From the NCBI RefSeq assembly GCF_006345805.1, contig NC_043025.1:13826001-13890000 (forward strand): DNA of 64,000 nucleotides. The letters are read 5' to 3'. The DNA is from Octopus sinensis. Lineage: Eukaryota. The notes beneath the pieces were generated by a model, which searched no databases, was not told where the DNA came from, and worked only from the letters and a program-made list of their open reading frames with translations. Position numbers and translations under genes: made by a program. Below, one piece after another: positions 8,634 through 40,802 of the stretch (the stretch's first letter is position 1; each line of letters begins with the position of its first letter).

Positions 8634-8683
<50 letters not shown>

Positions 8684-21705: not shown

Positions 21706-21917
21706 TTCCATTCTGTTTCTATGTTTTTCCCTGGGTTTCTCGAGTATAGATATAACGACATTATACCAGCAATGTCTCATCTTAAAAAAAAACCTTGCTT
21801 ATTTCTTCTCACCTGCTTCAGGTGTGTATGTAAATTCCGCCAATTTCCAACAAGAAAAACAGAATCGAAGTTTATGCATCGCAAATATCAGGAAACCAGA
21901 ATGCCGTATCGGTTATA

Positions 21918-22530
21918 CTACTCTTTTACTTGTATCAGCCATTTGACTGCGGCCATGCTGGAGCACCGCCATTTAGTTGAGCAAATCGACCCCAAGACTT
22001 ATTCTTCATAAGCCCAGTACTTATTCTATGGGTCTCTTTTGCCGAACCGCTAAGTTACGTGGACGTATACACACCAGCATCGGTTGTCGAGTGTTGTTGG
22101 GGGACAAACATACACACATATATATATATATATATAGGCGCAGGAGTGGCTGTGTGGTAAGTAGCTTGCTAACCAACCACATGGTTCCGGGTTCAGTCCC
22201 ACTGCGTGGCACCTTGGGCAGGTGTCTTCTACTATAGCCTCGGGCCGACCAAAGCCTTGTCAGTGGATTTGGTAGACGGAAACTGAAAGAAGCCCGTCGT
22301 ATATATGTATATATATATATATGTATGTGTGTGTTTGTGTTTGTCCCCCCTAGCATTGTTTGACAACCGATGCTGGTGTGTTTACGTTCCCGTCACTTAG
22401 CGGTTCAGCAAAAGAGACCGATAGAATAAGTACTGGGCTTACAAAGAATAAGTCCCGGGGTCGATTTGCTCGACTAAAAGCGGTGCTCCAGCATGGCCAC
22501 AGTCAAATGGCTGAAACAAGTAAAAGAGTA
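21918..22530. mobile_element. SINE family A: minus-strand 3' half (21918-22110) back to back with a plus-strand full copy (22137-22530)
   Basis: The two 3' halves form an inverted repeat. Confidence 0.85.
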
Positions 22531-23334
22531 ATACCTCACCTTATAAGAACCTGCTCTACGAGACCCTGGGTTTACAAGTTTTTTTCCACCTCACTTTTCT
22601 ATGATGAGCTAAAATTTTTCAAGTACAAGATCCATATATTGAATGAATTCCAAAAGTTTCTACTACCATAACAAATGCTTCTGCGTATTACCACGAAATA
22701 TATAGAGGGCAAAAACTCTAGACTTGTTTTTTAAAAAGAGATCTACAGGTCTGTCCATGAGTGCTTGTGAATTGGTGATTGTGTCTACAAGTGATGGTGT
22801 GTTTAAGTCCAGTGAAAATGAAAGTAATTCAGAAAACCATAATAATAATAATAATATTTTTTTATTATAAATGATCTTAACATTCTTTTTATTTTACAAA
22901 AAATATTTTTTACATTCTCCTGTTGTTTTATTGCCATTTATTTACAAGTATTATAAATTTTACAGGTAGAATATTTTTCTGGGAACCAATTGCCAGGACC
23001 CCTGGACTGGTGGCACGTAAAAAGCGCTATCCGTATCGTGGCCGATGCCATTGCCGCCTCGACTGGCTTCCGTGCCGGTGGCACGTAAAATGCACCAATC
23101 CGATCATGGCCGTTGCCAGCGTCACCTGGCACCTGTACAGGTGGCACGTAGAAAGCACCCACTATACTCATGGAGTGGTTGGCGTTAGGAAGGGCATCCA
23201 GCTGTAGAAACACTGCCAGATCAGACTGGAGCCTGGTGCAGCCTTCTGGCTTCCCAGATCCCCGGTCGAACCATCCAACCCATGCTAGCATGGAAAGCGC
23301 ACGCTAAACGATGATGATGATGAATTAGGAGTTA

Positions 23335-24010
23335 AAACGCTGCTCCTATGGGAGATTATTGTTCTGTTTTACAAGTTTCCGGTTTACAAGCAGACTCTGT
23401 GAAACGCTGCTCCTATGGGAGATTATTGTTCTGTTTTACAAGTTTCAGGTTTACAAGCAGACTCTGTGAAACGCTGCTCTATGGGAGATTATTGTTCTGT
23501 TTTACAAGTTTCCGGTTTACAAGCAGACTCTGTGAACGCTGCTCCTATGGGAATTATTGTTCTGTTTTACAAGTTTCCGGTTTACAAGCAGACTCTGTGA
23601 AACGCTGCTCCTATGGGAGATTATTGTTCTTTTTTACAAGTTTCCGGTTTACAAGCAGACTCTGTGAAACGCTGCTCCTATGGGAGATTATTGTTCTGTT
23701 TTACAAGTTTCCGGTTTACAAGCAGACTCTGTGAAACGCTGCTCCTATGGGAGATTATTGTTCTGTTTTACAAGTTTCCGGTTTACAAGCAGACTCTGTG
23801 AAACGCTGCTCCTATGGGAGATTATTGTTCTGTTTTTACAAGTTTCCGGTTTACAAGCAGACTCTGTGAAACGCTGCTCCTATGGGAGATTATTGTTCTG
23901 TTTTACAAGTTTCCGGTTTACAAGCAGACTCTGTGAAACGCTGCTCCTATGGGAGATTATTGTTCTGTTTTACAAGTTTCCGGTTTCCAAGCAGACCCTG
24001 GGAACTCCCA
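23335..24010 (+). repeat. 67-bp tandem array, ~10 units
   Basis: Unit GAAACGCTGCTCCTATGGGAGATTATTGTTCTGTTTTACAAGTTTCCGGTTTACAAGCAGACTCTGT. Confidence 0.95.
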
Positions 24011-24291
24011 TATCAAGGCATTATTTTACATATATTTGTGTGTGTGAAACTGATTAACTAAATACACGTTCAGGTGTAGTTTTATTGGGATTAAAATACC
24101 AGCAATGTCAGAGCAAAACTTTTTACAACAGTTCACCTGCATTTAATCAGGCACTCTCTCTTTTTCGTTGCGGTAGTCTTATTCTACTAGCGACACAAAC
24201 AGGACGTGTGTTGTGTTTTATTATTCCTAAGATAACCTTATAGAAGATATTACCTTCATAGAAAGAATTATGATACAGATACAATTACTCA

Positions 24292-24667
24292 CTAGCAGTA
24301 TCGCCCGGCATTGCTCGGGTCTCTAAGGGAAATAACTATAAAGCATTTTCAGAGATGTAAAGTATAATAGCCATCGCAATTTGTTACTGTAGCCTTTTAC
24401 TTTCTGAGATTTAATAATACATTTTTAGAGAGTTACTTCCCTTATATAATAGCAAAAAATTGAATTAAAAATGGGGAAAAAAATGATGGTAAATTTCTTT
24501 TTAAATCGTACACTCATCGTAGACGCGCGCTAATACCCAGAAGGGCTCGATATGAATCACGACTATAAGATACCTGCTTTTGGTTACACTACACCGCAAA
24601 ATGTGGGAGTAGTTAGGAATCTAAATCGTAGGAGACAGATACACAACTTCACTTTTATATATAAAGA
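24292..24667 (-). mobile_element. Non-autonomous Helitron-type element (376 bp)
   Basis: Minus strand starts TC (TCTTTATATATAAAAG), ends with hairpin CCCGAGCAATGCCGGG then CTAG, and lies between A and T. Confidence 0.8.
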
Positions 24668-24834
24668 TATTACAGTGATATGGCTTCTCCCATGCAAAAA
24701 TGTATTTATGTATATAGTTAAGTTAGCATTTTGAAAGAAGGATGTATTATAGATTTTTCAGCCGCAAGAATGGATTTGTGTTTAGTTAGCTGATTATTTT
24801 GAGAGAATGATTTATCACAGTGATATGGCTTTCC

Positions 24835-25854
24835 TCACGTATGTGTAAGTTTGTGTCTAGCCAAGCTATTTTTTATAGAAAATGATTTATCACAGATCTC
24901 ACACTGATATGGCTTTTCTCCTGTATGAACACGTCTGTGATTAGCTAAGTGATCCCTTCGAAAGAAAGATTTACCACAGATATCACAGTGGTATGTCACC
25001 TCTATTATATGAACAGATTTGTGTCTAGTGAAGCAACTGCCATCAGAGAATGATTTACCACAGATATCACACCGATATGGCTTCTCTCCTGTATGAACAC
25101 GTCTGTGTGTAATTAGAGTATGTTTCTGAGTAAATACTTGACCACAAATGTCACACCGATATGGCTTCTCTCCTGTATGAACACGTTTGTGTTTAGTTAA
25201 GAGATCACTTAGAGAGAATGATTTACCACAGATATCGCAGTGATATGGCTTTTCCCCTGTATGAATGCGTTTGTGTCTAGATAGTCGATTTCCTTCAGGG
25301 AATGATTTACCACAGATATCACAGCGATGTGGCTTCTCTCCTGTATGAATGTGTTTGTGTCTAGTTAAGTGATTATTTCGATAGAATGTTTTACCACAGA
25401 TATCACACCGATATGGCTTCTCTCCTGCATGAACAAGTTTGTGTGTAGTCAAGTAATTGCTTCGAGAGAATGATTTACCACAGATATCACACCGATATGG
25501 CTTTTCTCCTGTATGAACACGTTTGTGTATAGTTAAGGTATGCGCTTGAGAGAATGATTCACCACAAATGTCACAGTCAAATGGCTTCTCTCCTGTATGA
25601 ATGCGTTTGTGTCTAGATAGTTGACTTCCTTCAGAGAATGATTTACCACAGATATCACAGCGATGTGGCTTTTCTCCTGTATGAATACGTTTGTGAACAA
25701 TGAGATTACCTTTTTGAGAGAATGACATTTTACATATATCACAAGAATAGGGTTTTTGCCGTCCGTCTTTTCGCTTCTCATCAAGAAAATCATTATTGTC
25801 CAACTCTGATTTACATTTAACACTGCCGCCTTCACAGAATTCGTTTTCCATCAT
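24835..25854 (-). CDS. C2H2 zinc-finger protein, 339 aa, 11 tandem fingers, single coding exon
   Basis: Intact ORF: short acidic N-terminus (MMENEFCEGG...) then 11 C-x2-C-x12-H-x3-H units, mostly with TGEKP linkers. Confidence 0.93.
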   Translation of the reverse strand: MMENEFCEGGSVKCKSELDNNDFLDEKRKDGRQKPYSCDICKMSFSQKGNLIVHKRIHTGEKPHRCDICGKSFSEGSQLSRHKRIHTGEKPFDCDICGESFSQAHTLTIHKRVHTGEKPYRCDICGKSFSRSNYLTTHKLVHAGEKPYRCDICGKTFYRNNHLTRHKHIHTGEKPHRCDICGKSFPEGNRLSRHKRIHTGEKPYHCDICGKSFSLSDLLTKHKRVHTGEKPYRCDICGQVFTQKHTLITHRRVHTGEKPYRCDICGKSFSDGSCFTRHKSVHIIEVTYHCDICGKSFFRRDHLANHRRVHTGEKPYQCEICDKSFSIKNSLARHKLTHT

Positions 25855-26270
25855 TTTCTTCCTCTTACCACAATGTTCAGATGTTTTACTTTTTCCAAAC
25901 TAAATTTTGTTTTTATTAACAAATATTTATTCTCTTTATATTTCCTGAATCTTCTGTTATCTGAAGATGCCTCAAACTCCTTTGTCATCCAAGTTTAATT
26001 AGAATACCATATCATCTTCAAAACATTCCAGACAGTGAAGAAGTAGAGATATTTCGCTAACAGTCTTACTCGGAAGAAATATTCCACAGTAATTCCACCA
26101 TGTGTTTACATATTCTGTGTGATATCTGTTCCCTGTGATGTTCTCCTTTAATCTTTGAAAGATGGCAAACGTCGATTCTGACCACTGAAGTATTCTTTGC
26201 TGCCAATGTCTTCTGGTTATCTGAAATATCAGAGAAACTGCGTCAATCAGGGAGGAGACATAGAAATTTA

Positions 26271-26606
26271 AGGTTAGTTAGTTAGTTAATTTTTTGGCTT
26301 AAAAAGCAAAAAGCAAGGCCATGTAGGGGGACATGGAGTTATGTACAGGGTGGTGTTCATGTAAAGAGTTCGTCTTTGAACTGAGCGGTCGTCGGCATCT
26401 TCACCATCTCGTCCGGCAGCTTATCCCACGGATCCGCAACCCGGACGGGGAAGGCCCCTCTCCTTCGATTGAGATGAAATCGTCGCAGATAGATGTTTTC
26501 GGAATGACCCCGCAGCCGACGCTCTGGAGCAGGAGTGAAGAACAGCTCTTTCGAGAGGTTACACTTTCCACTTATGGTGTTGTGAGCAAGAATGAGATCA
26601 CCACGG
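26271..26606 (-). mobile_element. Mirror copy of the intronic CR1 3' fragment
   Basis: Reverse complement of ~33745-34090. Confidence 0.88.
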
Positions 26607-26850
26607 GACTTACTCTTTGTAAGCCCAGTACTTATTCTACCGGTCTCTTTTGCCGAACCGCTAAGTGACGGGGACGTATACACACCAGCATCAGTTGTCA
26701 AGCAGTGCTAGGGGGACAAACACACACACATGCATATATATATATATACATATTACAGGCTTCTTTCAGTTTCCGCCTACCAAATCCACTCACAAGGCAA
26801 TGGTCGGCCCGGGGCTATAGCAGAAGACACTTGCCCAAGACGCCACGCAG
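26607..26850 (-). mobile_element. SINE family A, truncated at both ends
   Basis: Internal portion between the CR1 and RTE fragments. Confidence 0.82.
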
Positions 26851-27960
26851 CCTTGCACACCACATCTGACGCTTCTTATGTCCAGCATTTCTCTCAGGGT
26901 GCTTACACTCTGTCGTGCGTGCAGACTGACATTACACATCCAGCGGATCATGCTAGCTTCATTTCTTTCAAGTCTACGCATGTCCTCTGCAGTCACAGCC
27001 CATGTTTCACTATCGTGAAGCATGGCAGTTCGCACACATGCATCATACAATCTACCTCTCACTCAGAGCGAGAGACCCTTTGTCGCCAGTAGGGGTAGGA
27101 GCTTTCTGAACTTTGCCCAGGCTATTCGTATTGTAGTGGTGATACTCTCTGAGCATCCACCTCCACTACTAACTTGGTCACCCAGGTAGCGGAAACTATC
27201 AACTACTTCTAGTTTCTCCCCCTGGAGTGTGATGGAATCTGTTTTCTGAGTGTCTGTGGTGTCTATTGTCCCTGTGCATCTGCCGCACATGAAAGCTATC
27301 TTATCAGTTAATTTCCCTTTAATGTTGCTGCACCTCTTATGCGTCCATAGCTTACATTGGGTGCATCTTATGGAGTTTCTACCTACAACTTTCCTACAGA
27401 TCGAGCAGGGCCACCTTCCCGAGGGTGTGTGTGCTGAGTTCGCCTTTCTGCTTACTATAACTTTGGTCTTTGCTACATTTACTCTAAGGCCCTTTGATTC
27501 TAACCCTTGCTTCCACACCCAAAATTTCTTTTTTAGTTCCGGTAGTAATTCTGCTATGAGACCCAGGTCATCAGCATAGAGGAGCTCCCAGGGGCATCCT
27601 GTCTTGAATTCCTCTGTTATTGCCTGGGGGACTATGATGAATAAAAGGGGACTGAGGGCTGAGCCTTGGTGTACACCTACTTCTACCCGGAATTCTTCAC
27701 TATATTCATTTCCAATCCTAACGTTGCTGACAGCCTCTCTGTATAGAGCCTGTACAGCCTTATTAGCCTTTCGTCAATCTCCAGTTTCTTCGCTCGCCAC
27801 CAGACAAGGGATAGGGGAACCCTGTCACAGGCTTTCTCCAAGTCCACAAAAGCTATGTAGAGGGGGTTTATCTTTAGCTTACTTCTCCTCCAGTTGTCGG
27901 ACCAGGATATAGCATCAGTGGTGCTTCTACCTGGCACAAAACCGAACTGCATCTCATCTA
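26851..27960 (-). mobile_element. RTE-clade LINE fragment (RT domain, PHD-like insertion, thumb region)
   Basis: [32 protein letters not shown] (CTCCTCTATGCTGATGAC), SFRYLG, MLHDSETWA; several frameshifts. Confidence 0.9.
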
Positions 27961-27995
27961 AGCAATATATATGTATATATATAAATATATGTATG

Positions 27996-28051
<56 letters not shown>

Positions 28052-28646
28052 TATGTATGTATTTATATATATATATGTATTTTATATTAATACATTTATA
28101 TATATATATATATCGTACATATACATGTATGTATTATATATATATATACATACATATTTATGTATTTATATATATATATATATATATACATATATATGTA
28201 TGTATTTATATATATATATATACACATACATACATATATATGTATGTATGTATATATATATGCATACATATTGATATTAATAACTTCACCACACACCCAC
28301 ACATTCAACCCCTTAATAATAACAACAACAGATCCTAAACATGGTACCATGGCCTTTTCTTTGATAATATCTTTCTTGCTTATTCAAATTCAGTTCAATG
28401 CAAACTTGCCTTCAGCCAACCATTTCTCTTTGTGTGTGTGTGTGTGTATGTTTTTGATAATCGTTTAGAACAAGTAGTTTTACACCTATGACACTATTTT
28501 GTCCATTTCTTTCTGGCCCGGGTCAAACACTTATAGTTTAAAGGCCATGGACCTTTTTTGTTTTTTGTGCCCGGGTCAAACGCTTTAGTTTGACCCATTA
28601 ACCAACACTATCGAAGTGAAATGGCGATCGTGTACTTCCGGAAGTG

Positions 28647-29096
28647 GGCGATCTTACGGCATTTCGTCTGCCGTTACGTTCTGAGTTCAAATTCCGCCGA
28701 GGTCGACTTTGCCTTTCATCCTTTCGGGGTCGATAAATTAAGTACCAGTTACGCACTGGGGTCGATGAAATCGACTTAATCCCTTTGTCTGTCCTAGTTT
28801 GTCCCCTCTGTGTTTAGCCCCTTGTGGGTAGTAAAGAAATAGGTATAAGTACCGCTGTACTTCCGCAAGTACGGGATACGTTTCAAAAAAGGTTTTTTTT
28901 TTTATATATATGGGGGGGTTAGGGTTAGGGTATGTGGCGATCCTTCGGTATATGTACACACGGGGCTTTACATTTCTGAAGATAAAAGAAACCCTTTTCT
29001 GCCACCCCGAACACAAACCCTAACCCTAACACCCCATATATAAAAAAAACACCCACTTTTTTTAAATGTATCCGGTACTTATACCGTAAGATCGCC
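28647..29096. mobile_element. MITE with 24-bp TIR GGCGATCTTACGGTATAAGTACCG and internal inverted TTAGGG/CCCTAA motifs, interrupted by a SINE; mirror copy 30180-30601
   Basis: TIRs at 28647 and 29074-29096; GGTTAGGGTTAGGG ~28918 and ACCCTAACCCTAAC ~29017. Confidence 0.65.
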
Positions 29097-29131
29097 AGCG
29101 AAATAATAGTTTAACCATAGAGAGGCCTTAC

Positions 29132-29400
29132 CTGTCGACCGAGGCGGGACGAGCGATCGCTGCCCTTAAATTGAAGAAAACCAGGGTCCTGCCACCCTTG
29201 CCGTCTCTCATTGAATTGCGCCGACGTGCTTTCTGTCCGCGCATGCGGCCGTGGCCTGCAGTCTTCACTTCCGTTTACCTCAATATGCAATCCCCGTGAC
29301 CATCACCCCAGAGCTCATTAAAACCCATAACGCCCACGCATACGATTTTACGAAGACCGAACTTTGTGCGCGCGAGTTCGAGGAGCTTTACGATGGTACT
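29132..29400 (-). promoter_or_regulatory. CpG-rich promoter and inferred non-coding exon 1 of the minus-strand ZNF gene
   Basis: NRF1-like GCGCATGCG 29239-29247, ETS-like CACTTCCG 29266-29273; minus-strand donor CAG|GTAAGG at 29132/29131; matching acceptor TTTCAG| at 26221/26220. Confidence 0.6.
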
Positions 29401-29536
29401 ACTCGAGAACAGTGGTCCCGGTGCGCGCACTCGCCTAAGCTAGCCGTGATTAGTCGATCCTACGACGACCTAATTAGCAAAGTAAATAACACAAAAACAC
29501 AATGTAAAGATCGACTAGTCATGACTAGCTGGCGCG
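29395..29536 (+). mobile_element. Truncated GGTAC-TIR MITE (left arm); mirror copy 29737-29878; further fragments 16748-16853, 35504-35592, 40493-40525
   Basis: Same TIR sequence as 40581-40801; second TIR truncated after GCTGGCGCG. Confidence 0.7.
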
Positions 29537-29879
29537 TGTGCTTGTTCTTGTCTGTGTGACCGATAAAAAAATTCTGGGCTTATGAAGAATAAGTCCCGGG
29601 GTCAATTTGCTCAACTAAATGGCGGTGCTCCAGCATGGCCGCAGTCAAATGACTGAAACAAGTATGTAATGTCGTTATGTCTATACTCGAAAACCCACGG
29701 AAAAACATAGAAACAGAATGGAAAAGAACAAGCACACGCGCCAGCTAGTCATGACTAGTCGATCCTTACATTGTGCTTTTGTGTTATTTACTTTGCTAAT
29801 TAGGTCGTCGTAGGATCGACTAATCACGGCTAGCTTAGGCGAGTGCGCGCACCGGGACCACTGTTCTCGAGTAGTACCA

Positions 29880-30144
29880 TCGTAAAGCTCCTCAAACGCG
29901 CGCACAAAGTTCGGTCTTCGTAAAATCGTATGCGTGGGCGTTATGGGTTTTAATGAGCTCTGGGGTGATGGTCACGGGGATTGCATATTGAGGTAAACGG
30001 AAGTGAAGACTGCAGGCCCCGGCGGAAGAGCCACGGGCGCATGCGCGGACAGAAAGCACGTCGGCGTAATTCAATGAGAGATGGCAGGACCCTATTTTTC
30101 TTCAATTTAAGGGCAGCGATCGCTCGTCCCGCCTCGGTCGACAG
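29880..30144 (+). promoter_or_regulatory. CpG-rich promoter and inferred non-coding exon 1 of the plus-strand ZNF gene
   Basis: CGGAAGTG 29998-30005, GCGCATGCGC 30037-30046; donor CAG|GTAAGG at 30144/30145; acceptor TTTCTCTGATATTTCAG| at 34141/34142. Confidence 0.6.
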
Positions 30145-31058
30145 GTAAGGCCTCTCTATGGTTAAACTATTATTTCGCTGGCGACCTTACGGTATAAGTA
30201 CCGGATACATTTAAAAAAAGTGGGGGTTTTTATATATGGGGGTTAGGGTTAGGGATTGGAGAAAAGGGTTTACCTATACCGAAGGATCCCCACATACCCT
30301 AACCCTAACCCATCATATATATAAAAGAAACCCTTTTTTGAAACGTATCCCGTACTTGCGGAAGTACAGCGGTACTTATACCTATTTCTTTACTACCCAC
30401 AAGGGGCTAAACACAGAGGGGACAAACTAGGACAGACAAACGGATTAAGTCGATTTCATCGACCCCAGTGCGTAACTGGTACTTAATTTATCGACCCCGA
30501 AAGGATGAAAGGCAAAGTCGACCTCGGCGGAATTTGAACTCAGAACGTAACGGCAGACGAAATACCGTTAAGCATTTGGGTACTTATACCGTAAGATCGC
30601 CCACTTCCGGAAGTACACGATCGCTATTTCACTTCGATAGTGTTGGTTAATGGGTCAAACTAAAGCGTTTGACCCAGGCACAAAAAACAAAAAAGGTCCA
30701 TGGCCTTTAAACTATAAGTGTTTGACCCGGGCCAGAAAGAAATGGACAAAATAGTGTCATAGGTGTAAAACTACTTGTTCTAAACGATTATCAAAAACAT
30801 ACACACACACACACACAAAGAGAAATGGTTGGTTGAAGGCAAGTGTGCATTGAACTGAATTTGAATAAGCAAGAAAGATATTATCAAAGAAAAGGCCATG
30901 GTACCATGTTTAGGATCTGTTGTTGTTATTATTAAGGGGTTGAATGTGTGGGTGTACGGTGAAGTTATTAATATCAATATGTATGCATATATATACAAAT
31001 ACATATATATGTATATATATACATACATATATATGTATTTGTATATATATATGTATTT

Positions 31059-31436
31059 TGGTAAGTAGCTTGCTAACCAACCACATGGTTCCGGGTTCAG
31101 TCCCACTGCGTGGCATCTTGGGCATGTGTCTTCTGCCATAGCCCCGGGCCGACCAATGCCTTGTGAGTGGATTTGGTAGACCGAAACTGAAAAGAAGCCC
31201 GTCGTATATATGTATATATATATATAAGTGTGTCTGTGTTTGTCCCCCTAGCATTGCTTGACAACCGATGCTGGTGTGTTTACGTCCCTGTCACATAGCG
31301 GTTCGGCAAAAGAGACCGATAGAATAAGTACTGGGCTTACAAAGAATAAGTCCCGGGGTCGATTTGCTCGACTAAAGGCGGTGCTCCAGCATGGCCGCAG
31401 TCAAATGACTGAAACAAGTAAAAAGAGTAAAAAAGA
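31059..31436 (+). mobile_element. SINE family A
   Basis: Near full-length copy. Confidence 0.85.
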
Positions 31437-31614
31437 AAAGAGAGTATACATACATATATATATAAATACTTATATATATGTAAATGCATATATATATATA
31501 AATATATACATATATTTATATATATATATACATATTATATTAAATTAGAATCAAAACCACTATTATGCAAATCAAACAAAGAAATACTTAAGCCAATACA
31601 TAAAATAATTTATA

Positions 31615-31735
31615 TAACCACTACGATCGTTTCGTGTCAGCACATCTTAGACATTCTTCAGGTGGTTTCTAACCTTCTTAGAAACCACCTGAAGAATGTC
31701 TAAGATGTGCTGACACGAAACGATCGTAGTGGTTA
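31615..31735. ncRNA. Perfect 58-bp inverted repeat carrying a minimal hammerhead motif on each strand
   Basis: Plus strand: AACCAC-CTGAAGA-ATGTC..GACAC-GAAAC-GATC-GTA-GTGGTT (31683-31734); arms 31615-31672 and 31678-31735, loop CCTTC; A-C mismatch at the base of stem II. Confidence 0.7.
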
Positions 31736-31997
31736 TTCATTTGTTAAATTTTAATTTATATAAATTATTTTATGTATTGGCTTAAGTCTTTCTTTGATTT
31801 GCATAAAAGTGGTTTTGTCTCTAATTTATTATAATATAATATTTTATTATAAAATTGGATTCAATCTTAAATCTGATTTTTCCTTGTAAATTTGGATTTA
31901 TTCCTTAATATTTATTATTATATATATACATATATAATTATATATGTATATACATACATGCATGTATATATATACATACATATATATATATATATAT

Positions 31998-32036
<39 letters not shown>

Positions 32037-32118
32037 CACACACACATACATACATACTTATATATATATATACACATACATATATATATATGTACACACG
32101 CACACATACATACATACT

Positions 32119-32157
<39 letters not shown>

Positions 32158-33020
32158 ATATATATATGGGTGTGTGTGATTGTGTATAGAAGAATTATTA
32201 ATAAAAAGAATTCCAACCTTGTCTGATTTTCACGTTTTATTTACAATCTTATAATGATATATTATAAGATAATATATTATAATTGAATAAAATAAAATGA
32301 AATAGTAGAATGTTAAATATTCATTCTGATTGAACTAGTACTTTCATGCATTGAATTCTGCAATCTTCGGGTTCATGTAGTAGTGTTGACAGTCATGCTT
32401 CACAATTTTTGACTGTAGCAAGATGATTGATTCTGTGCTATAAATACAGCTGGGTAGGCTCCAGAGTGCTAGTTTTGCAAACTGTATTCTGACCAATCAG
32501 TGTGTAGTATCACTCAATTACTTAAGCTGATTGGTTGGTTGAGCTGATTGGTTTAGGCATCACGCTTTGTTGGACATGTCAAGAGTCCTGTATCTTGACC
32601 CTGGCCGAAGCAGCAATTGTTGGGTTATTTTTAGAAATGTTGTAAATATCCTTTATACATATACAACAAATGTTGTAAATATCCTTTATACATATACAAC
32701 AAATGTTGTAAATATCCTTTATATATATACACACACATACATACATATTTATATACATATATATATATATTCTAGCAGTATAACCCAGTTTTGCCCGGCA
32801 TTAAGTTAGGATTATTAAGCTAAAGATGTTCTTTATTTCAAACCAAACAGAATACATTCCTTGCCACCGGTACAACACTCACCGACAAACCGCCGCCAAG
32901 CAGCTCGAGAAATTCCGTTTGTCTCGTCAAAAGCCAGCACACCAAACTGACCGACGCATGCGCGGGAAGCAAGCTTCTTACCCTGTACCTATGGTAGAAT
33001 TTTTCAGAAATCCTACAGGA

Positions 33021-33405
33021 TTGGCTGTGTGGTAAGTAGCTTGCTAACCCACCACATGGTTCCGGGTTCAGTCCCACTGCATGGCATCTTAGGCAAGTGT
33101 CTTCTGCTATAGCCTCGGGCTGACCAATGCCTTGTGAGTGGATTTGGTAGACGGAAACTGAAAGAAACCTGTCGTATATATGTATATATATATATATATG
33201 CGTGTGTTTGTCCCCCTAGCATTGCTTGACAACCGATGCTGGTGTGTTTACGTCCCCGTTACTTAGCGTTCGGCCAAAGAGACTGATAGAATAAGTACTG
33301 GGCTTACAAAGAATAAGTCCCGGGTTCGATTTGCTCGACTAAAGGCGGTGCTCCAGCATGGCCGCAGTCAAATGACTGAAACAAGTCAGAGAGTAAAGAG
33401 TAAGA
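33021..33405 (+). mobile_element. SINE family A
   Basis: Near full-length copy. Confidence 0.85.
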
Positions 33406-33544
33406 GTATCTAACCTTCCAGCAGTGTATAAACAGAACATCAGGACATCTATTTCTTTGGCTTCATTTAAATTTTACTTCCAGATTGATTCAATTATGAA
33501 ACTGCCAAGGAATTTTCAATTTGTGAAATACTGTCAAATTTCTA

Positions 33545-34090
33545 TTATTCCTACCGCTCTATGTCGTGCTGGTGAGACCCATATTGGAGTACGGGATTCA
33601 AGCCTCTTCTCCTTATCTCCTCAAAGACATACAGCATCTCGAAAGAGCCCAGAAGCTGGCTACCCGCATGGTTCTTTTGTCTTATGAAGAAAGGCTGAAG
33701 ACGTTAGACCTTTATTCTCTAGAAAAACGATGTTGCCGTGGTGATCTCATTCTTGCTCACAACATCATAAGCGGAAAGTGTAACCTCTCGAAAGAGCTGT
33801 TCTTCACTCCTGCTCTAGAGCGTCGGCTGCGGGGTCATTCCGAAAAGCTCTATCTGCAACGATTTCATCTCAATCGAAGGAGAGGAGCTTTCTCCGTCCG
33901 GGTTGCGGATCCGTGGGATAAGCTTCCGGACGAGATGGTGAAGATGTCGACGATAGCTCGGTTCAAAGTCTCCCTTGACCACAAGTGGCCTGAACTCTTT
34001 ACATGAACACCCCCTGTACATAACTCCATGTCCCCCTACATGGCCTTGCTTTTTGCTTTTTGACCCAAAAAATTAACTAACTAACTAACC
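33545..34090 (+). mobile_element. CR1-clade LINE 3' fragment with (TAAC)n tail in the ZNF intron
   Basis: LVRPILEYG, LERAQKLATRMV, RGDLI, RLRGHSEKL, FSVRVADPWDKLP. Confidence 0.9.
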
Positions 34091-34504
34091 TTCAATTTCT
34101 ATGTCTCCTCCCTGATTGACGCAGTTTCTCTGATATTTCAGATAACCAGAAGACATTGGCAGCAAAGAATACTTCAGTGGTCAGAATCGACGTTTGCCAT
34201 CTTTCAAAGATTAAAGGAGAACATCACAGGGAACAGATATCACACAGAATATGTAAACACATGGTGGAATTACTGTGGAATATTTCTTCCGAGTAAGACT
34301 GTTAGCGAAATATCTCTACTTCACTGTCTGGAATGTTTTGAAGATGATATGGTATTCTAATTAAACTTGGATGACAAAGGAGTTTGAGGCATCTTCAGAT
34401 AACAGAAGATTCAGGAAATATAAAGAGAATAAATATTTGTTAATAAAAACAAAATTTAGTTCGGAAAAAGTAAAACATCTGAACATTGTGGTAAGAGGAA
34501 GAAA

Positions 34505-35443
34505 ATGATGGAAAACGAATTCTGTGAAGGCGGCAGTGTTAAATGTAAATCAGAGTTGGACAATAATGATTTTCTTGATGAGAAGCGAAAAGACGGAGGG
34601 CAAAAACCCTATTCTTGTGATATATGTAAAATGTCATTCTCTCAAAAAGGTAAACTCATTGTTCACAAACGTGTTCATACAGGAGAAAAGCCATATCGGT
34701 GTGATATCTGTGGTAAATCATTCTCTCGAAGTGATCACTTATCTAGACACAAACGCATTCATACAGGGGAAAAGCTATTTGACTGTGACATTTGTGGTGA
34801 ATCATTTACTCAGAAAGATATTCTAATTAAACACAAACGTATTCATACAGGAGAGAAGCCATATCACTGTGATATCTGTGGTAAATCATTCTCTCAAAGC
34901 GATCACTTGACTACACACAAACGCAATCATACAGGAGAGAAGCCATTTAACTGTGACATTTGTGGTGAATCATTTACTCGGAAAGATACTCTAATTAAAC
35001 ACAAACGTATTCATACGGGAGAGAAGCCATATCAGTGTGATATCTGTGGTAAATCATTCTCTTATAGCAGTAGCCTCACTAAACACAAACCTGTTCATAC
35101 AGGAGACAAGCCATATCAGTGTGATATCTGTGGTAAATCATTCTCTTATGGCAGTAGCTTCACTAAACACAAACCTGTTCATACAGGAGAGAAGCCATAT
35201 CACTGTGAGATCTGTGGTAAATCATTTACTGAGAAAGGTGCTCTAATTAAACACAAACGTGTTCATACGGGAGAGAAGCCATATCAGTGTGATATCTGTG
35301 GTAAATCATTCTCTCGAAGTGATCAATTAGCTAATCACAGATATGTTCATACAGGAGAGAAGCCATATCACTGTGAGATCTGTGGTAAATCATTTTCTGT
35401 AAAAAATAGCTTGGCTAGACACAAACTTACACACACGGGATAA
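34505..35443 (+). CDS. C2H2 zinc-finger protein, 312 aa, 10 tandem fingers; inverted paralog of the 24835-25854 gene
   Basis: Intact ORF, near-identical N-terminus to the minus-strand copy, 10 C2H2 units, ends [13 protein letters not shown]. Confidence 0.93.
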   Translation: MMENEFCEGGSVKCKSELDNNDFLDEKRKDGGQKPYSCDICKMSFSQKGKLIVHKRVHTGEKPYRCDICGKSFSRSDHLSRHKRIHTGEKLFDCDICGESFTQKDILIKHKRIHTGEKPYHCDICGKSFSQSDHLTTHKRNHTGEKPFNCDICGESFTRKDTLIKHKRIHTGEKPYQCDICGKSFSYSSSLTKHKPVHTGDKPYQCDICGKSFSYGSSFTKHKPVHTGEKPYHCEICGKSFTEKGALIKHKRVHTGEKPYQCDICGKSFSRSDQLANHRYVHTGEKPYHCEICGKSFSVKNSLARHKLTHTG

Positions 35444-35556
35444 AAGCCATATCACTGTGATAAATCATTCTCTCAAAATAATCAGCTAACTAAACACAAA
35501 TCCACTTTGCTAGGTAGGTCGTCCTAGGATCGACTAGTCACGGCTAGCTTAGGCGA

Positions 35557-36501
35557 GTGCGCGCACCGGGACCACTGTTCTCGAGTAGTACCATCGTAAA
35601 GCTCCTCAAACTCGCGCGCACAGGAGAGAAGCCATGTCACTGTGATATCTGTGGTAAATCATTCTCTGAAGGAAATCAACTATCTAGACACAAACGCATT
35701 CATACAGGAGAGAAGCCATTTGACTGTGACATTTGTGGTGAATCATTTACTCGGAAAGATACTCTAATTAAACACAAACGTATTCATACAGGAGAGAAGC
35801 CATATCACTGCGATATCTGTGCTAAATCATTCTCTCAACAAAAATATGTAACTAGACACAAACGTATTCATACAGGAGAGAAACCTTATCACTGTGAGAT
35901 CTGTGATAAATCATTCGCTTTGAGCAGTAACTTAACTAGACACAAACGTGTTCATACAGGAGAGAGGCCATATCAGTGTGATATCTGTGGTAAATCATTC
36001 TCTGAAGGAAGTCAACTATCTATACACAAATTCACTCACACAGGAGAGAAACCCTATCACTGTGAGATCTGTGGTAAATTATTTACTGAGAAAGGTACTC
36101 TAATTACACACAAATGTATTCATACGGGAGAGAAGCCATATCGGTGTGATATCTGTGGTAAATCATTCTCTGATGGCAGTGGCTTAACTAGACACAAACT
36201 TGTTCATATAGGAGAGAGGACATACCACTGTGATATCTGTGGTAAATCATTCTCCCGAAGTGATCACTTAGCTAATCACAGACGTGTTCATACAGGAGAG
36301 AAGCCATATCGGTGTGATATCTGTGGTAAATCATTCTCTGATGGCAGTTGCTTCACTAGACACAAATCTGTTCATATAATAGAGGTGATATCTGTGGTAA
36401 ATCTTTCTTTCGAAGGGATCACTTGGCTAGACACAAACTTACACATACGTGAGGAAAGCCATATCACTGTGATAAATCATTCTCTCAAAATAATCAGCTA
36501 A
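35557..36501 (+). pseudogene. Second C2H2 array (9 intact fingers) lacking the normal N-terminus and frameshifted in finger 10
   Basis: Fingers begin ~35620 after a foreign 119-bp insert; ORF start is a GTG inside the insert; after HKSVHIIEV a 13-nt deletion relative to the minus-strand gene shifts the frame. Confidence 0.7.
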
Positions 36502-36789
36502 CTAAACACAAATCCATTCTTGCGGGTGAAAAATCTATAATACATCCTTCTTTCAAAATGGTAACTTAAATATACATAAGTAAACTTTTGCATGGGGGAA
36601 GCCATATCACTGTGATATCTGTGATAAATCATTCCCCAAAAAGACAATTCATTACACAAGTAATGTGTTTGTAAAGGGAACTGGTTGCTTCTGTAGACTT
36701 TTGGGGTGCAACACAATTTCCTTTCTTTTTGTTTCTAGATACTACCAGTCAGGAACAAAACGCAAGCTTAAAAATATATACAATTCTTT

Positions 36790-37140
36790 ATGTTAGTTAG
36801 TTAATTTGGCTCAAAAGCAAATAGCAAGGCCATGTAGGGGGACATGGAGTTAAGTACAGGGTGGTGTTCATGTAAAGAGTTCAGGCCCCTTGAGGTCCAG
36901 GGAGGCTTTGAACAAAGCGGTCGTCGGCATCTTCACCATCACGTCTGGCAGCTTGTTCCACAGATCCGCAACCCGGATGGAGAAAGCTCCTCTCCTTCGA
37001 TTGAGATGAAATCGTCGCAGGTAGAGCTTTTCAGAATGACCCCGCAGCCGACGCTCTGGAGCAGGAGTGAAGAACAGCTCTTTCGAGAGGTTACACTTTC
37101 CGCTTATAATGTTGTGGGCGAGAATGAGATCACCACGGCG
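36790..37140 (-). mobile_element. Third copy of the same CR1 3' fragment, downstream of the finger arrays
   Basis: RGDLILAHNIISGKCNLSKELFFTPAPERRLRGHSEKL...ELFT and (TAAC)n tail. Confidence 0.88.
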
Positions 37141-37802
37141 GCGGTGATCTTGGTTCAACAATGAACACGATGGTATACTGGTTGGTATCCACCTAGTTCA
37201 ACACAGCAAGGCTGAATTCTAACGTTTGTAAGCTTCTTAGAATAATTCAGGAGCAATAGAACAGGTGAAATCCTAAGCGTCTGGGATAGGAGAATAGGCT
37301 GATCACAAGTTTAAAATACGTCCTTTCACTTCTATCGCCGTGTCTCAAGTCAACGACGCTATTAAGGAACGCGATAGAATTTCTTCTTCAGTCTCTAGCA
37401 CAAGTGCATGGGGGAACTTCCTTATGCCTTTCCAGAAGGTTCCAACCCCGCACACGCACACTGAAGAAGAACGTTGTGTGTGCGCACACTGGAATATGAC
37501 GTCACTACATGTTCATACAAGTGAGTAATTGTATGTGTATCATAATTCTTTCTATGAAGGTAATATCTTCTATAAGATTATCTTAGAAATAATAAAACAC
37601 AACACACGTCCTGTTTGTGTCGCTAGTAGAACAAGACTACCGCAACGAAAAAGAGAGAGTGCCTGATTAAATACAGGTGAAATGTTGTGAAAAGTTTTGC
37701 TCTGACATTGCTGGTATTTTAATCCCAATAAAACTACACCTGAACGTGTATTTAGTTTATCACTTTCACACACACAAATATATATAAAATAATGCCTTGA
37801 TA

Positions 37803-39017
37803 TGGGAGTTCACAGAGTCCGCTTGTAAACCGGAAACTTGTAAAACAGAACAATAATCTCCCATAGGAGCAGCGTTTCACAGGGTCCGCTTGAAAACCGG
37901 AAACTTGTAAAACAGAACAATAATCTCCCATAGGAGCAGCGTTTCACAGGGTCCGCTTGAAAACCGGAAACTTGTAAAACAGAACAATAATCTTCCATAG
38001 GAGCAGCGTTTCACAGGGTCCGCTTGAAAACCGGAAACTTGTAAAACAGAACAATAATCTCCCATAGGAGCAGTGTTTCACAGGGTCCGCTTGAAAACCG
38101 GAAACTTGTAAAACAGAACAATAATCTCCCATAGGAGCAGCGTTTCACAGGGTCCGCTTGAAAACCGGAAACTTGTAAAACAGAACAATAATCTCCCATA
38201 GGAGCAGCGTTTCACAGGGTCCGCTTGAAAACCGGAAACTTGTAAAACAGAACAATAATCTCCCATAGGAGCAGTGTTTCACAGGGTCCGCTTGAAAACC
38301 GGAAACTTGTAAAACAGAACAATAATCTCCCATAGGAGCAGCGTTTCACAGGGTCCGCTTGTAAACCGGAAACTTGTAAAACAGAACAATAATCTCCCAT
38401 AGGAGCAGCGTTTCACAGAGTCTGCTTGTAAACCGGAAACTTGTAAAACAGAACAATAATCTCCCATAGGAGCAGCGTTTCACAGAGTCTTCTTGTAAAC
38501 CGGAAACTTGTAAAACAGAACAATAATCTCCCATAGGAGCAGCGTTTCACAGAGTCTGCTTGTAAACCGGAAACTTGTAAAACAGAACAATAATCTCCCA
38601 TAGGAGCAGCGTTTCACAGAGTCTTCTTGTAAACCGGAAACTTGTAAAACAGAACAATAATCTCCCATAGGAGCAGCGTTTCACAGAGTCTGCTTGTAAA
38701 CCGGAAACTTGTAAAACAGAACAATAATCTCCCATAGGAGCAGTTTTTCACAGGGTCCGCTTGAAAACCGGAAACTTGTAACACAGAACAATAATCTCCC
38801 ATAGGAGCAGCGTTTCACAGAGTCTGCTTGTAAACCGGAAACTTGTAAAACAGAACAATAATCTCCCATAGGAGCAGCGTTTCACAGAGTCTGCTTGTAA
38901 ACCGGAAACTTGTAAAACAGAACAATAATCTCCCATAGGAGCAGCGTTTCACAGGGTCCGCTTGAAAACCGGAAACTTGTAAAACAGAACAATAATCTCC
39001 CATAGGAGCAGTGTTTT
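37803..39017 (-). repeat. 67-bp tandem array, ~18 units, inverted paralog of 23335-24010
   Basis: Same unit on the minus strand; the ORF track repeats every 67 bp. Confidence 0.95.
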
Positions 39018-39816
39018 AAATCCTAATTCATCATCATCATCGTTTAGCGTGCGCTTTCCATGCTAGCATGGGTTGGACGGTTCGACCGGGGATCTGGGAA
39101 GCCAGAAGGCTGCACCAGGCTCCAGTCTGATCTGGCAGTGTTTCTACAGCTGGATGCCCTTGCTAACGCCACCCACTCCGTGAGTGTAGTGGGTGCTTTC
39201 TACGTGCCACCTGTACAGGTGCCATGCGAGGCTGGCAACGGCCACGATTGGATTGGTGCATTTTACATGCCACCGGCACGGAAGCCAGTCGAGGCGGCAA
39301 TGGCATCGGCCACGATACGGATAGTGCTTTTTACGTACCACCAGTCTAGGGGTCCTGGCAATTGGTTCCCAGAAAAATATTCTACCTGTAAAATTTATAA
39401 TACTTGTAAATAAATGGCAATAAAACAACAGGAGAATGTAAAAAATATTTTTTGTGAAATAAAAAGAATGTCAATATCATTTATAATAAAAAAATATTAT
39501 TATTATTATGGTTTTCTGAATTACTTTCATTTTCACTGGACTTAAACACACCATCACTTGTGGACACAATCACCAATTCACAAGCACTCATGGACAGACC
39601 TGTAGATCTCTTTTTAAAAAACAAGTCTAGAGTTTTTGCCCTCTATAAATTTCGTGGTAATACGCAGAAGCATTTGTTATGGTAGTAGAAACTTTTGGAA
39701 TTCATTCAATATATGGATCTTGTACTTGAAAAATTTTAGCTCGTCATAGAAAAGTGAGGTGGAAAAATATGTAAACCCAGGGTCTCGTAGAGCAGGTTCT
39801 TATAAGGTGAGGTATT

Positions 39817-40022
39817 ACTCTTTTACTTGTTTCAGCCATTTGACTGCGGCCATGCTGGAGCACCGCTTTTAGTCGAGCAAATCGACCCCGGGACTTATTC
39901 TTTGTAAGCCCAGTACTTATTCTATCGGGCTCATCTGCCGAACCGCTAAGTGACAGGGACGTAAACACACCAGCATCGGTTGTCAAGCAATGCTAGGGGG
40001 ACAAACACATACACACACACGC

Positions 40023-40053
<31 letters not shown>

Positions 40054-40210
40054 TACGACAGGCTTCTTTCAGTTTCCGTCTACCAAATCCACTGACAAGG
40101 CTTTGGTCGGCCCGAGGCTATAGTAGAAGACACTTGCTCAAGGTGCCATGAAGTGGGACTGAACCCAAAACATGTGGTCAGTAAACAAGCTACTTACCAC
40201 ACAGCCACTC
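39817..40210 (-). mobile_element. SINE family A (mirror of 22137-22530)
   Basis: Shares the ATGGCTGAAAC variant and the flanking unique sequence. Confidence 0.85.
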
Positions 40211-40244
40211 AAGAAATTAGATATTTAAATGTTTTGTTTTCAGA

Positions 40245-40492
40245 GTATTTTTATTTCCTTTGCCAAGGACTCCAAACTTGCCATCGAGATGTAAGACAAG
40301 ATACTGCGATAGCCTGGGCTTCAGAGGTCCACAGCTCTTCAATATCTTCCCGAAGGACCTGAGAGACCTGCATGGGGTGGATGCAGATGTCTTTAAAATA
40401 AAGCTGGACCTCTTCCTGTCAGGTGTCCCAGATGAACCAACTTCACGGCAGGAGGTGCAGATGAGGGCAGCTGCATCAAACTCTCTCATGCT
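40245..40492 (+). mobile_element. CR1/L2-type LINE extreme 3' fragment
   Basis: GFRGPQLFNIFPKDLRD...FKIKLDLFLSGVPDEP...NSL. Confidence 0.7.
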
Positions 40493-40580
40493 AGTCGTGA
40501 CTAGTCGATCCTACAACGATTACCTAGCAATTCCCAAAACCGAGTTCAAGTATAAGCAACTCTCAAAACCGGTTTTCGCG

Positions 40581-40801: not shown

Positions 40802-40802
40802 C

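Follow-up and report, generated by a model that had tools for sequence, protein, structure and literature searches.

A genuine-looking inverted duplication with a divergent pair of zinc-finger genes in an octopod genome

Two intact ORFs for C2H2 zinc-finger (ZNF) proteins lie 8.65 kb apart in the window (the whole 64-kb stretch of DNA that was analysed) and are transcribed divergently (Table 1). The left gene is on the minus and the right gene on the plus strand, in agreement with the head-to-head pair described in an earlier sequence-only reading of this DNA. The gene looks single-exon, and its arrays consist of tandem C-x2-C-x12-H-x3-H fingers with TGEKP linkers. Pfam zf-C2H2 matched the arrays of 11, 10 and 9 fingers with E values of 7e-62, 2e-62 and 4e-48, respectively. 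KRAB, SCAN and BTB were absent among the best 25 Pfam matches for each of the three arrays, all of which were to zinc-finger or small metal-binding families. The 36-aa N-terminus had no relative in a collection of 5.8 billion proteins, and exact-product look-ups of the ORFs gave no match. Both genes are presumed to be functional. No other ZNF gene was found in the 64-kb window, so that no clustered expansion is visible here, and a ~2 kb segment previously called intronic lies between the two divergent genes, where nothing marks it as an intron.

Table 1. Coordinates of the genes, repeats, duplication arms and junctions in the window
Feature	Position	Strand	Description
Copy A	16743-22136	+	abuts left arm; order z-satellite-flankR-SINE tail
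z2 in copy A	16744-16858		
28-bp satellite in copy A	16853-21705		~167 units, 4.85 kb
flankR in copy A	21706-21763		followed by a 160-bp extra piece
SINE tail e2 in copy A	21916-22136		
Left arm	22144-29558		7.4 kb, colinear inverted chain
Left outer SINE-like element a	22140-22533	+	full length
67-bp tandem array, left	23335-24004		10 units, one subtype
Left C2H2 ZNF ORF	24835-25854	-	339 aa, 11 fingers, 36-aa non-finger N-terminus
Ultra-conserved block	25762-26268	-	~410 bp upstream of ATG to finger 1; partner ~34093-34597
LINE 3' tail just upstream of left ZNF	26357-26606	-	partner 33736-34100 (+)
Left-only non-LTR retroelement fragment	26851-27965	-	RT C-terminus and PHD-like finger (Pfam PHD match)
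z1, MITE-like hairpin element	29427-29541	+	33-nt imperfect TIRs
Junction J1	29558/29559		region 29550-29565; satellite unit ending in GTCTGTGTG joined to SINE position 277, ACCGATA
Single-copy centre (spacer)	29559-29723		165 bp; SINE tail and 57 bp of flankR
SINE tail of centre	29558-29664		SINE consensus positions 277-383
flankR in centre	29667-29723		contiguous with right arm
Right arm, inverted copy	29724-40210		10.5 kb, colinear inverted chain
z3, mirror copy of z1	29732-29846	-	98.7% identical
Right-only SINE copy	31059-31436	+	inserted in AT-rich microsatellite
Right C2H2 ZNF ORF (array A)	34505-35443	+	312 aa, 10 fingers, N-terminus as in left gene
Filler between arrays A and B	35509-35620	+	112 bp, templated
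Right array B	35557-36501	+	9 fingers and frameshifted L10/L11 finger fusion, no ATG
Extra right-only LINE 3' tail copy	36788-37139	-	
67-bp tandem array, right	37809-39016		18 units, about half of right-private subtype
Head of right outer SINE a'	40100-40210	-	probable hybrid part
Inverted block	22144-24004 and 40210-38345		95.7% (BLAST)
Inverted block	24005-24293 and 37808-37520		96.5% (BLAST)
Inverted block, fingers included	24899-26606 and 35460-33736		89% (BLAST)
Inverted block	28186-28959 and 31056-30268		92.9% (BLAST)
Inverted block	29014-29552 and 30258-29721		92.8% with gaps, ~96% by substitutions only (BLAST)

The two genes differ in their finger arrays and agree most closely at their 5' ends. 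The extra array that had been noticed on the right is array B. Left fingers L2, L9 and L10 matched fingers B1 (95%), B9 (99%) and B8 (94%), and by its sequence array B is positionally orthologous to left fingers 2-11. The right arm carries, between fingers 1 and 2, a block that the left arm lacks, made up of A2-A10, a stop, 70 nt of 3'UTR and the 112-bp filler, which is a reverse-complement copy of arm sequence ~29355-29466 (z and arm-specific flank). The block around the start codon, which holds a TATAAAG motif at -86, differs between the arms by one substitution in ~507 bp. Divergence in this promoter/5' block was 0.9%, compared to 3.6% for the rest (99.1% vs 96.4% identity, p=9e-5).

Self-comparison and arm alignment gave a colinear inverted chain, bearing out the ~18 kb inverted duplication with mirror-image order that had been proposed. 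The chain is far above chance (E = 0 for kb-scale blocks; BLAST, arm vs arm), and ~73% of the left arm is alignable to the right arm. The right arm is enlarged by the extra finger array, by SINE and LINE-tail insertions and by 8 more 67-bp units, in line with the longer array reported there. The left-only retroelement piece, called an RTE fragment in the sequence-only reading, is here a non-LTR RT C-terminus/PHD fragment; its RT best matches were all to Octopus bimaculoides, in keeping with an octopod host. Substitution divergence between the arms is ~3.1%, spread along their length, with a longest identical tract of 229 bp; together with the large arm-specific insertions this upholds the claim of independently changing arms and a real duplication. 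The ~3% divergence, the heavily reshuffled arrays and the several TE insertions indicate that the duplication is old, and so not the snapshot of ZNF birth that had been suggested. The unique sequence of the arm was not met with again in the 64-kb window, so that the gene-bearing segment is present in two copies only, and no arm-body homology was found left of 16743.

A partial copy of the right arm's inner end, copy A, abuts the left arm and extends only from z to the SINE tail. To judge from sequence comparison it is the older sister of that inner end, and its position against the left arm reveals that rearrangement of an earlier layer took place at this locus. The centre between the arms has the same order as copy A (z-satellite-flankR-SINE tail), and the SINE tails e2 and e3 have four private derived states in common, among 19 tails. 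Three features did not appear in the sequence-only reading: the third partial copy with its expanded satellite, a hybrid-looking outer SINE and the templated filler.

The asymmetric centre, GTG joined to ACCGATA, was placed at 29558/29559 (J1), as had been described; the spacer given as a ~110-bp SINE fragment (29559-29665) was right as to its SINE part and too short in extent, since the centre also takes in flankR. Microhomology at J1 is at most 1 nt. Neither inverted microhomology (2-8 bp) nor a hybrid repeat was found at this junction, with no inverted k-mer longer than 4 nt or above chance. The left arm ends 17 nt past the z hairpin, within the first satellite unit. Its 9 nt of satellite (GTCTGTGTG) are missing from the right arm as it now stands, which counts against a fold-back in that a later contraction has to be assumed. 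Such satellite contraction may have erased evidence of homology at J1.

The z element has the size, TIRs and copy number of a MITE (~115 bp, with 33-nt TIRs at 74-80% complementarity). Three full copies are present, with pieces at 35509-35620 and at 40480-40803, the latter diverged and a short way beyond the right arm; on the left, homology between the copies stops at different points, 29395 in the arms and the right flank and 29426 in copy A. As single-stranded DNA, z1 and z3 folded at -22.95 kcal/mol (z=-3.2 vs shuffles) and -24.6 kcal/mol (z=-3.6), respectively, and the z2 hairpin was not significantly more stable than shuffles (z=-1.65). The idea that the duplication was nucleated next to MITE TIRs holds for proximity, the hairpin lying 17 nt from J1, and fails for the TIRs as pairing site, because complete copies are present in both arms. 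Three rearrangement signatures within 25 kb coincide with z or adjoin it, namely J1, the inter-array filler and the 4.85-kb satellite of copy A. A further speculation, which we consider unlikely, is that z and its GT-rich satellite seed form a recurrent fragile or fork-stalling site which, across octopod genomes, gives rise to fold-back duplications, templated insertions and bursts of satellite and in this way specifically powers the growth of the C2H2-ZNF family.

At the outer edge, both arms end in a ~397-bp SINE-like element with at least 25 copies or fragments in the 64 kb; it has box-like motifs by eye, and ARAGORN and Rfam gave no tRNA match. The first ~8 nt of the SINE, present in a, are missing from the right element, a'. 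Differences between a and a' are concentrated in the head (11/78, vs 10/273 in the body; p=0.0017). Against the consensus, the head of a' is the most diverged of 16 copies (9/78, vs 11/273 in the body; p=0.022), whereas a is homogeneous from head to body (p=0.74). The body of a is the closest relative of a', with 10/273 mismatches vs 16-25 to other copies. The hybrid look of this head, on ~78 nt of sequence, and the collapse of arm homology inside the outer SINE suggest that a' is a probable hybrid, which would place the second junction, J2, at ~40100-40135. Clustered mutation or gene conversion could also account for the divergent head. The colinear chain and the homogeneity of a suggest that the left arm is probably the copy sitting in its ancestral context.

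The locus thus presents adjacent inverted colinear copies and a single-copy spacer that runs on into one arm and is ordered as in copy A. Fold-back duplications are marked by a single-copy spacer and by hybrid repeats or short homology (PMC3907307). Based on the order of the spacer, the hybrid-looking outer SINE and the z hairpin 17 nt from J1, we favour, at a probability of roughly 0.6, a fold-back or intra-fork template-switch duplication that was later remodelled by finger-array reshuffling and the 112-bp templated filler. The stall-and-switch order of events, and which arm is the original, are what we infer as follows. An ancestral segment of ~7-8 kb would have carried one apparently single-exon C2H2 poly-zinc-finger gene and its promoter region. 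Synthesis through the left copy would have stalled just past the z hairpin, in the first unit of the GT-rich 28-bp satellite, and the 3' end would have primed anew on the complementary template, a few hundred bases further along, where position 277 of the SINE-like tail lies, creating J1. From there copying would have returned across flankR, z, the ZNF gene and then the 67-bp array, and left the template inside the SINE through homology with another, older SINE, yielding the hybrid SINE and J2. The product would have two arms and two divergent ZNF genes, with a single-copy spacer of 165 bp joined to the inverted arm. Later changes would include ~3% point divergence, finger-array reshuffling, the difference in the block between fingers 1 and 2 (right only), 67-bp copy-number changes, TE insertions, and satellite contraction in the arms with expansion in copy A. 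The ≤1 nt of microhomology at J1 counts against a fold-back, as documented fold-back junctions usually have 2-8 bp.

The nearest alternative, which we regard as unlikely, begins with a fold-back that gave a perfect or longer palindrome, whose unstable centre subsequently lost sequence in an asymmetric deletion that joined satellite to mid-SINE. Long palindromes with short centres are deletion-prone, and J1 lacks microhomology, as expected for an end-joined deletion. The right arm has flankR and the SINE tail, which are missing from the left, and within the inner arm similarity is highest in the 230 bp closest to the centre (97-100%). However, this history needs one event more than a primary spacer, left no remnant of a second flankR/SINE-tail copy on the left, and would have to arrive at a 165-bp centre with exactly the form of a fold-back loop (PMC3907307). 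The trimmed palindrome centre of the sequence-only reading is not needed, since a fold-back or template switch leaves such a single-copy spacer from the start, in the order seen in copy A.

An assembly artefact, with two haplotypes or two collapsed paralogues from elsewhere joined in inverted orientation, is very improbable. The assembly is scaffolded and the region very repeat-rich; however, the nearest N run, 100 Ns at 5785-5884, lies 16 kb away from the left arm, and neither junction has a gap. Octopod heterozygosity is reported as 0.08-1.1%, and the 3.1% divergence of the arms is about three times that or more (PMC9795677, PMC6472339). Looking for signs of a haplotype mis-join, we found neither divergence at the allelic level (3.1% vs ≤1.1%) nor a join at a gap. 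The arms also differ by kb-scale non-homologous replacements, the extra finger array and the private 67-bp subtype, and J1 is a clean join whose right side continues in copy A order. The divergence above ~1.1%, the private repeat subtype and the arm-specific insertions argue for a real, fairly old duplication rather than mis-joined haplotypes. Collectively, the locus in this octopod genome looks like a real inverted segmental duplication whose arms evolved independently.

Equally improbable is a history in which the ZNF segment was first duplicated in tandem (direct orientation) and one copy was then inverted by recombination between SINEs or MITEs lying in opposite orientation. The window is SINE-dense (at least 25 pieces), the right arm and spacer are flanked by SINE sequence in opposite orientation, 29558-29664 (+) and 39813-40210 (-), one of these bounding SINEs looks hybrid, and copy A with the left arm resembles 1.x tandem units. 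Such a history, however, would leave full-length hybrid SINEs at both ends, whereas at J1 satellite meets SINE position 277 without any homology; it needs at least two large events, and arm-body homology is lacking left of copy A. There is next to no chance that the arms are two nearby, opposite insertions of a large mobile element carrying a ZNF gene: octopus genomes are TE-rich (PMC12988792) and the arms are bounded by repeats, but their ends fall inside a SINE body and a satellite unit rather than at element termini, terminal repeats and target-site duplications are absent, and the unique arm sequence has no further copy in the window.

The favoured fold-back or template-switch duplication resembles human constitutional inverted-duplication fold-backs (Hermetz et al. 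2014, PMC3907307), which likewise have inverted arms and, between them, a short single-copy spacer that continues into one of the arms, with signs of templated insertion nearby; they also have a junction within a hybrid interspersed repeat, as a' probably is. In the human cases the spacer is 766 bp to 70 kb, compared to 165 bp here, and microhomology is usually 2-8 bp, compared to ≤1 nt at J1. The probable octopus hybrid repeat lies at the far rather than the spacer junction, and the event is interstitial with no visible terminal deletion, and evolutionarily fixed and old rather than de novo. Fission-yeast palindromic chromosomes and ODIRA (PMC10766183) are similar in having a hairpin-capable inverted repeat and a repetitive tract at the switch point, and in the proposed switch from the leading strand to the lagging-strand template. 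In contrast, the octopus MITE TIRs, whole in both arms, are not the switch site, and ODIRA predicts an inverted triplication where only two copies of the gene-bearing segment are seen. An inverted-repeat-nucleated palindrome or ODIRA does not fit the locus, as the centre is SINE tail and flankR rather than the z loop and a direct-inverted-direct triplication is absent in the window.

Gene palindromes on mammalian sex chromosomes also have kb-scale inverted arms, a short spacer and a gene in each arm, and their arms are homogenised by arm-to-arm exchange to >99.9% identity. The octopus locus shares this layout, and regional differences in identity, but its arms are only ~97% identical. Near-identity is confined to the promoter/5' block, so there is no evident sign of gene conversion still acting along the whole arms.

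Octopods have hundreds to thousands of C2H2-ZNF genes, an expansion for which the usual account is plain tandem duplication. The locus is a base-pair-resolved example of another route, in which an inverted, fold-back-type duplication copies a gene with its promoter and yields a divergent ZNF pair at once, whose finger arrays afterwards grow apart through reshuffling. It also illustrates the appearance of such events once a few percent of divergence has built up, which is of use in distinguishing true palindromic duplications from assembly errors where mollusc genomes are rich in repeats. By itself a single locus changes no current view, and this is a clear but ordinary case of zinc-finger family growth, its mechanism and gene family being of known kinds. 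As in published cephalopod C2H2 expansions (Albertin et al. 2015; PMC9795677; PMC12513265), the genes are octopod poly-C2H2 genes with TGEKP-linked fingers and no KRAB, SCAN or BTB, duplicated locally in a repeat-rich region. The words 'inverted', 'orientation' and 'head-to-head' are absent from the 2025 cephalopod C2H2 survey. Whereas those expansions have been published as tandem duplications and clusters, the genes described here form an isolated inverted pair in 64 kb.

The sequence-only reading had described an inverted duplication of ~22140-40210 carrying a head-to-head pair of ZNF genes. A colinear antidiagonal chain linking the two arms was recovered by both a seed-and-extend scan and self-BLAST, which bears out the duplication. 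This chain of blocks defines the left arm as 22144-29558 (7.4 kb) and the right arm, its inverted copy, as 29724-40210 (10.5 kb), with ~73% of the left arm alignable to the right. We rejected a palindrome extending outward at low identity: apart from pieces resembling the MITE-like element z, the outer flanks of the two arms are unrelated (score of 19 for the right flank versus the mirrored left flank, null 18.8, z-like pieces excluded). C2H2 fingers within the 64-kb window are confined to the two arms. The two complete ZNF ORFs lie on opposite strands and point apart, as a head-to-head pair should; they have a common N-terminus, MMENEFCEGG..., and their ATGs are 8.65 kb apart.

Coordinates of features of the inverted arms (window positions)
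Feature	Left arm	Right arm	Orientation or strand	Identity or product
Arm block	22144-24004	40210-38345	inverted	95.7%
Arm block	24005-24293	37808-37520	inverted	colinear chain
Arm block	24899-26606	35460-33736	inverted	89%
Arm block	28186-28959	31056-30268	inverted	92.9%
Arm block	29014-29552	30258-29721	inverted	92.8%
Non-homologous replacement (kb-scale)	24294-24664	36621-37519		
Non-homologous replacement (kb-scale)	26851-28185	31437-33735		
Right-only SINE		31059-31436		
Right-only LINE tail		36788-37139		
Left ZNF ORF	24835-25854		minus	339 aa, 11 fingers
Right ZNF ORF (array A)		34505-35443	plus	312 aa, 10 fingers
Array B, start-less ORF		35557-36501		9 fingers

The centre had been taken for a SINE spacer. 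A piece of SINE is indeed present (29558-29664, consensus positions 277-383 of a ~397-bp SINE-like repeat), but the spacer also contains flankR, the right flank of a satellite, so that it spans 29559-29723 (165 bp) and is more structured than proposed. Sequence at 29426-29558 matches 16743-16875 at 94% and comprises the left flank and first unit of this satellite, which has a 28-bp unit, while 29667-29737 matches the reverse complement of its last unit and right flank at 96%. Read on the minus strand, the inner end of the right arm runs from z through half a satellite unit and flankR to a SINE tail (e3). The order is identical in copy A (16743-22136), a third, partial copy adjoining the left arm, which consists of z2, ~167 satellite units, flankR, 160 extra bp and the SINE tail e2. 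The two tails have four derived states in common that are present in none of 17 other SINE tails, which makes them sister copies of one composite unit; these private states and the same neighbour, flankR, exclude independent SINE insertions. On the left, only z and the first 23 nt of satellite precede the break; the 165 bp therefore occur in single copy, continuous with the right arm. The sole novel join at the centre, J1, lies between 29558 and 29559, where the joining of GTG to ACCGATA described from the sequence was found. Microhomology at J1 is at most 1 nt, and no inverted k-mer exceeded chance.

Element z is located at 29427-29541 (z1), mirrored at 29732-29846 (z3), and is also found at 16744-16858 (z2). 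It has 33-nt imperfect terminal inverted repeats, and in single-stranded form both z1 and z3 give a stem of ~35 bp (-23 and -24.6 kcal/mol; z-scores against shuffles, -3.2 and -3.6). The start of the 28-bp satellite coincides exactly with the right inverted repeat of z. Nucleation of the duplication beside MITE terminal repeats had been proposed; the junction does lie 17 nt past z, but the complete element is retained in both arms, so its terminal repeats were not the pairing site. In copy A the satellite occupies 4.85 kb (16853-21705; GT-rich unit GTGTGCTTGTTCTTGTCTGTGTGTGTGT, 87% matches). The arm copies of z have merely 0.5-0.8 of a unit at the position where it starts, and the copy A satellite looks to have grown out of a MITE-adjacent seed. 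A more novel but improbable reading, based on co-occurrence in one window, is that z and the satellite seed make up a recurrent breakage site fuelling ZNF birth. Directly left of copy A is a minus-strand reverse transcriptase fragment with a YADD motif (16229-16669), whose best relatives, with identities of 70-83%, are all 'jockey-like' RT copies from O. bimaculoides, in keeping with an octopod host. Diverged z-like pieces (40480-40803) form a small hairpin just beyond the right arm (hairpin arms 40579-40647 and 40735-40803, 88% complementary). Ahead of this hairpin lies the C-terminal end of a LINE-like ORF (40260-40592), a hint of kinship between z and a LINE 3' region.

At its outer edge each arm ends in a SINE-like copy. 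The bodies of these two copies are mutual closest relatives (10/273 differences, versus 16-25 to any other copy), and their heads differ at 11 of 78 sites (p=0.0017 versus body). The head of the right outer SINE is the most diverged among 16 copies (9/78), is heterogeneous with its own body (p=0.022) and is without the element's first ~8 nt, while the left outer SINE is homogeneous (p=0.74). The simplest reading of this alignment is that arm homology stops within the SINE and that the right copy is a hybrid, representing a second junction (J2). A hybrid left copy templated by the right arm was rejected when realignment made the right outer SINE the outlier, which reversed the inferred direction of copying. 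'Decayed heads' in two other right-arm SINEs were 5'-truncation artefacts on realignment. The ~397-bp family contributes at least 25 copies or fragments, roughly a tenth of the window, and carries an internal (TA)n/(TG)n tract (for example, 271-672, 2257-2648, 4256-4653, 14641-15048 and 57492-57895). Its head has pol-III box-like motifs yet is not recognised as tRNA-like by ARAGORN or Rfam. ARAGORN found no tRNA over 21800-40400, Rfam at gathering threshold gave no match in the whole window, and permissive Rfam matches on the SINE were chance miRNA matches.

For the inverted duplication we favour an intra-fork fold-back or template-switch origin, the signature of which is a single-copy spacer on one arm together with a hybrid repeat or short homology (PMC3907307). 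Leading-strand synthesis through the left copy would have stalled on meeting the hairpin of z and the GT-rich satellite. Its 3' end would have switched to the lagging-strand template and re-primed a few hundred bases further on, at position 277 of the SINE tail, creating J1. From there flankR, z, the gene and the 67-bp array would have been copied in the reverse direction, until homology of the copied SINE to an older one in opposite orientation allowed return to the chromosome and left the hybrid at J2. Such a course would involve two junctions and no extra deletion, and would keep the left arm in its ancestral setting beside copy A. Its weak points are a J1 without microhomology, 9 nt of satellite found only on the left and a short hybrid signal. 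Less probably, a longer palindrome was trimmed afterwards, which would need one event more. Tandem duplication followed by SINE-mediated inversion should have produced a full-length hybrid SINE at each end, and J1 is not one. Two insertions of a ZNF-carrying element fit poorly with arm ends that are not element termini.

Counting substitutions only, the non-coding, non-array arm blocks are 93-99% identical and 3.1% divergent overall. Divergence is significantly heterogeneous among blocks (chi-square p=7e-4), and differences are dispersed along the whole length, the longest perfect run being 229 bp. In the 67-bp array there are 10 copies on the left and, as the sequence-only reading had it, more on the right (18; 37809-39016). 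About half of the right-hand units are of a subtype (TTTTCAAGCGGACCC) with no member in the left array; this private subtype accounts for the extra units, and the right array is a local expansion after the duplication. No clear target-site duplication was readable at the right-only SINE, which has AT microsatellite surroundings. For octopods, reported heterozygosity ranges from 0.08 to 1.1%, and the divergence of O. vulgaris from O. bimaculoides is ~8% (PMC9795677, PMC6472339). Set against this heterozygosity, the arm divergence and structural differences, with the sole N run of the window at 5785-5884 (100 N, scaffold gap), make an assembly artefact of two mis-joined haplotypes unlikely. The 3.1% divergence, private 67-bp subtype and non-homologous segments instead uphold the view of independently differing arms and a real duplication. 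At roughly 0.4 of the vulgaris-bimaculoides distance, the duplication is fairly old, so that the supposed 'snapshot' of ZNF birth is rather the remodelled survivor of an old event.

Remodelling is evident in the finger arrays. The extra array claimed for the right arm (array B) was confirmed, and it is linked to array A by a filler (35509-35620), a 112-bp copy of arm sequence at ~29355-29466. The source is ~6 kb away in the same arm. This templated insertion is ~3.6% diverged from it, the same as arm from arm, and is about as old as the duplication. It has z2-like (ancestral) states where z1 and z3 have common derived ones, suggesting either later homogenisation of z1 and z3 or an origin before the arms were duplicated. 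Finger-by-finger comparison paired left-gene fingers L1 with A1 (98%), L2 with B1 (95%), L9 with B9 (99%), L10 with B8 (94%) and L11 with A10 (92%), and both A3 and A5 with B2 (98%). B10 is a frameshifted L10/L11 fusion, with L11 contributing, and the middle fingers reach only 76-90%. By this pairing, the right gene corresponds to the left gene with fingers 1 and 2 separated by a block (A2-A10, stop, 70 nt of 3'UTR, filler); the other possibility is loss of the block from the left gene through unequal exchange between linkers. Divergence between orthologous fingers was 11.9% in the recognition helix versus 6.2% (p=0.026), a weakly positive signal driven by one finger pair, and we do not claim positive selection on recognition helices.

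The genes differ by one substitution in a stretch of ~507 bp that starts ~410 bp before the ATG and runs to finger 1 (25762-26268 and ~34093-34597). Divergence of this promoter/5' block is 0.9% versus 3.6% elsewhere (p=9e-5), with neighbouring sequence at 3-6%. The block begins at the end of a LINE 3' tail and has TATAAAG at -86 from the ATG. Its conservation could be accounted for by purifying selection acting on the two promoters or by a tract of local gene conversion. A search with the left ZNF protein returned solely generic vertebrate and arthropod poly-ZNFs at ~50% identity, uninformative on species or orthologues; the non-finger N-terminus gave zero candidates in a protein search, and neither ORF had an exact-product record in public assemblies.

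Simple repeats were also observed. AT-rich TA/TATG-type microsatellite tracts (GC ~20%; 60276-61640, 7164-7993, 27965-28261 and 31908-32167), the largest ~1.4 kb, cross-match one another on both strands. GC-richer (52%) low-complexity stretches at 8000-10000 and 13630-14312 contain long Pro/His/Thr-rich ORFs on both strands and are probably simple repeats rather than genes. A 33-bp tandem repeat (32635-32731; 2.9 copies, 98% identity) lies in right-arm-only sequence.

Established phenomena include short-spacer inverted segmental duplications, hybrid breakpoint repeats, templated insertions and zinc-finger arrays that reshuffle rapidly. In octopods, clustered or tandem C2H2 expansions have been well documented (PMC9795677, PMC12513265), and a 2025 survey of cephalopod C2H2 expansions contains no discussion of orientation or inverted duplicates. 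The locus described here is a well-resolved, fresh instance of these established phenomena.
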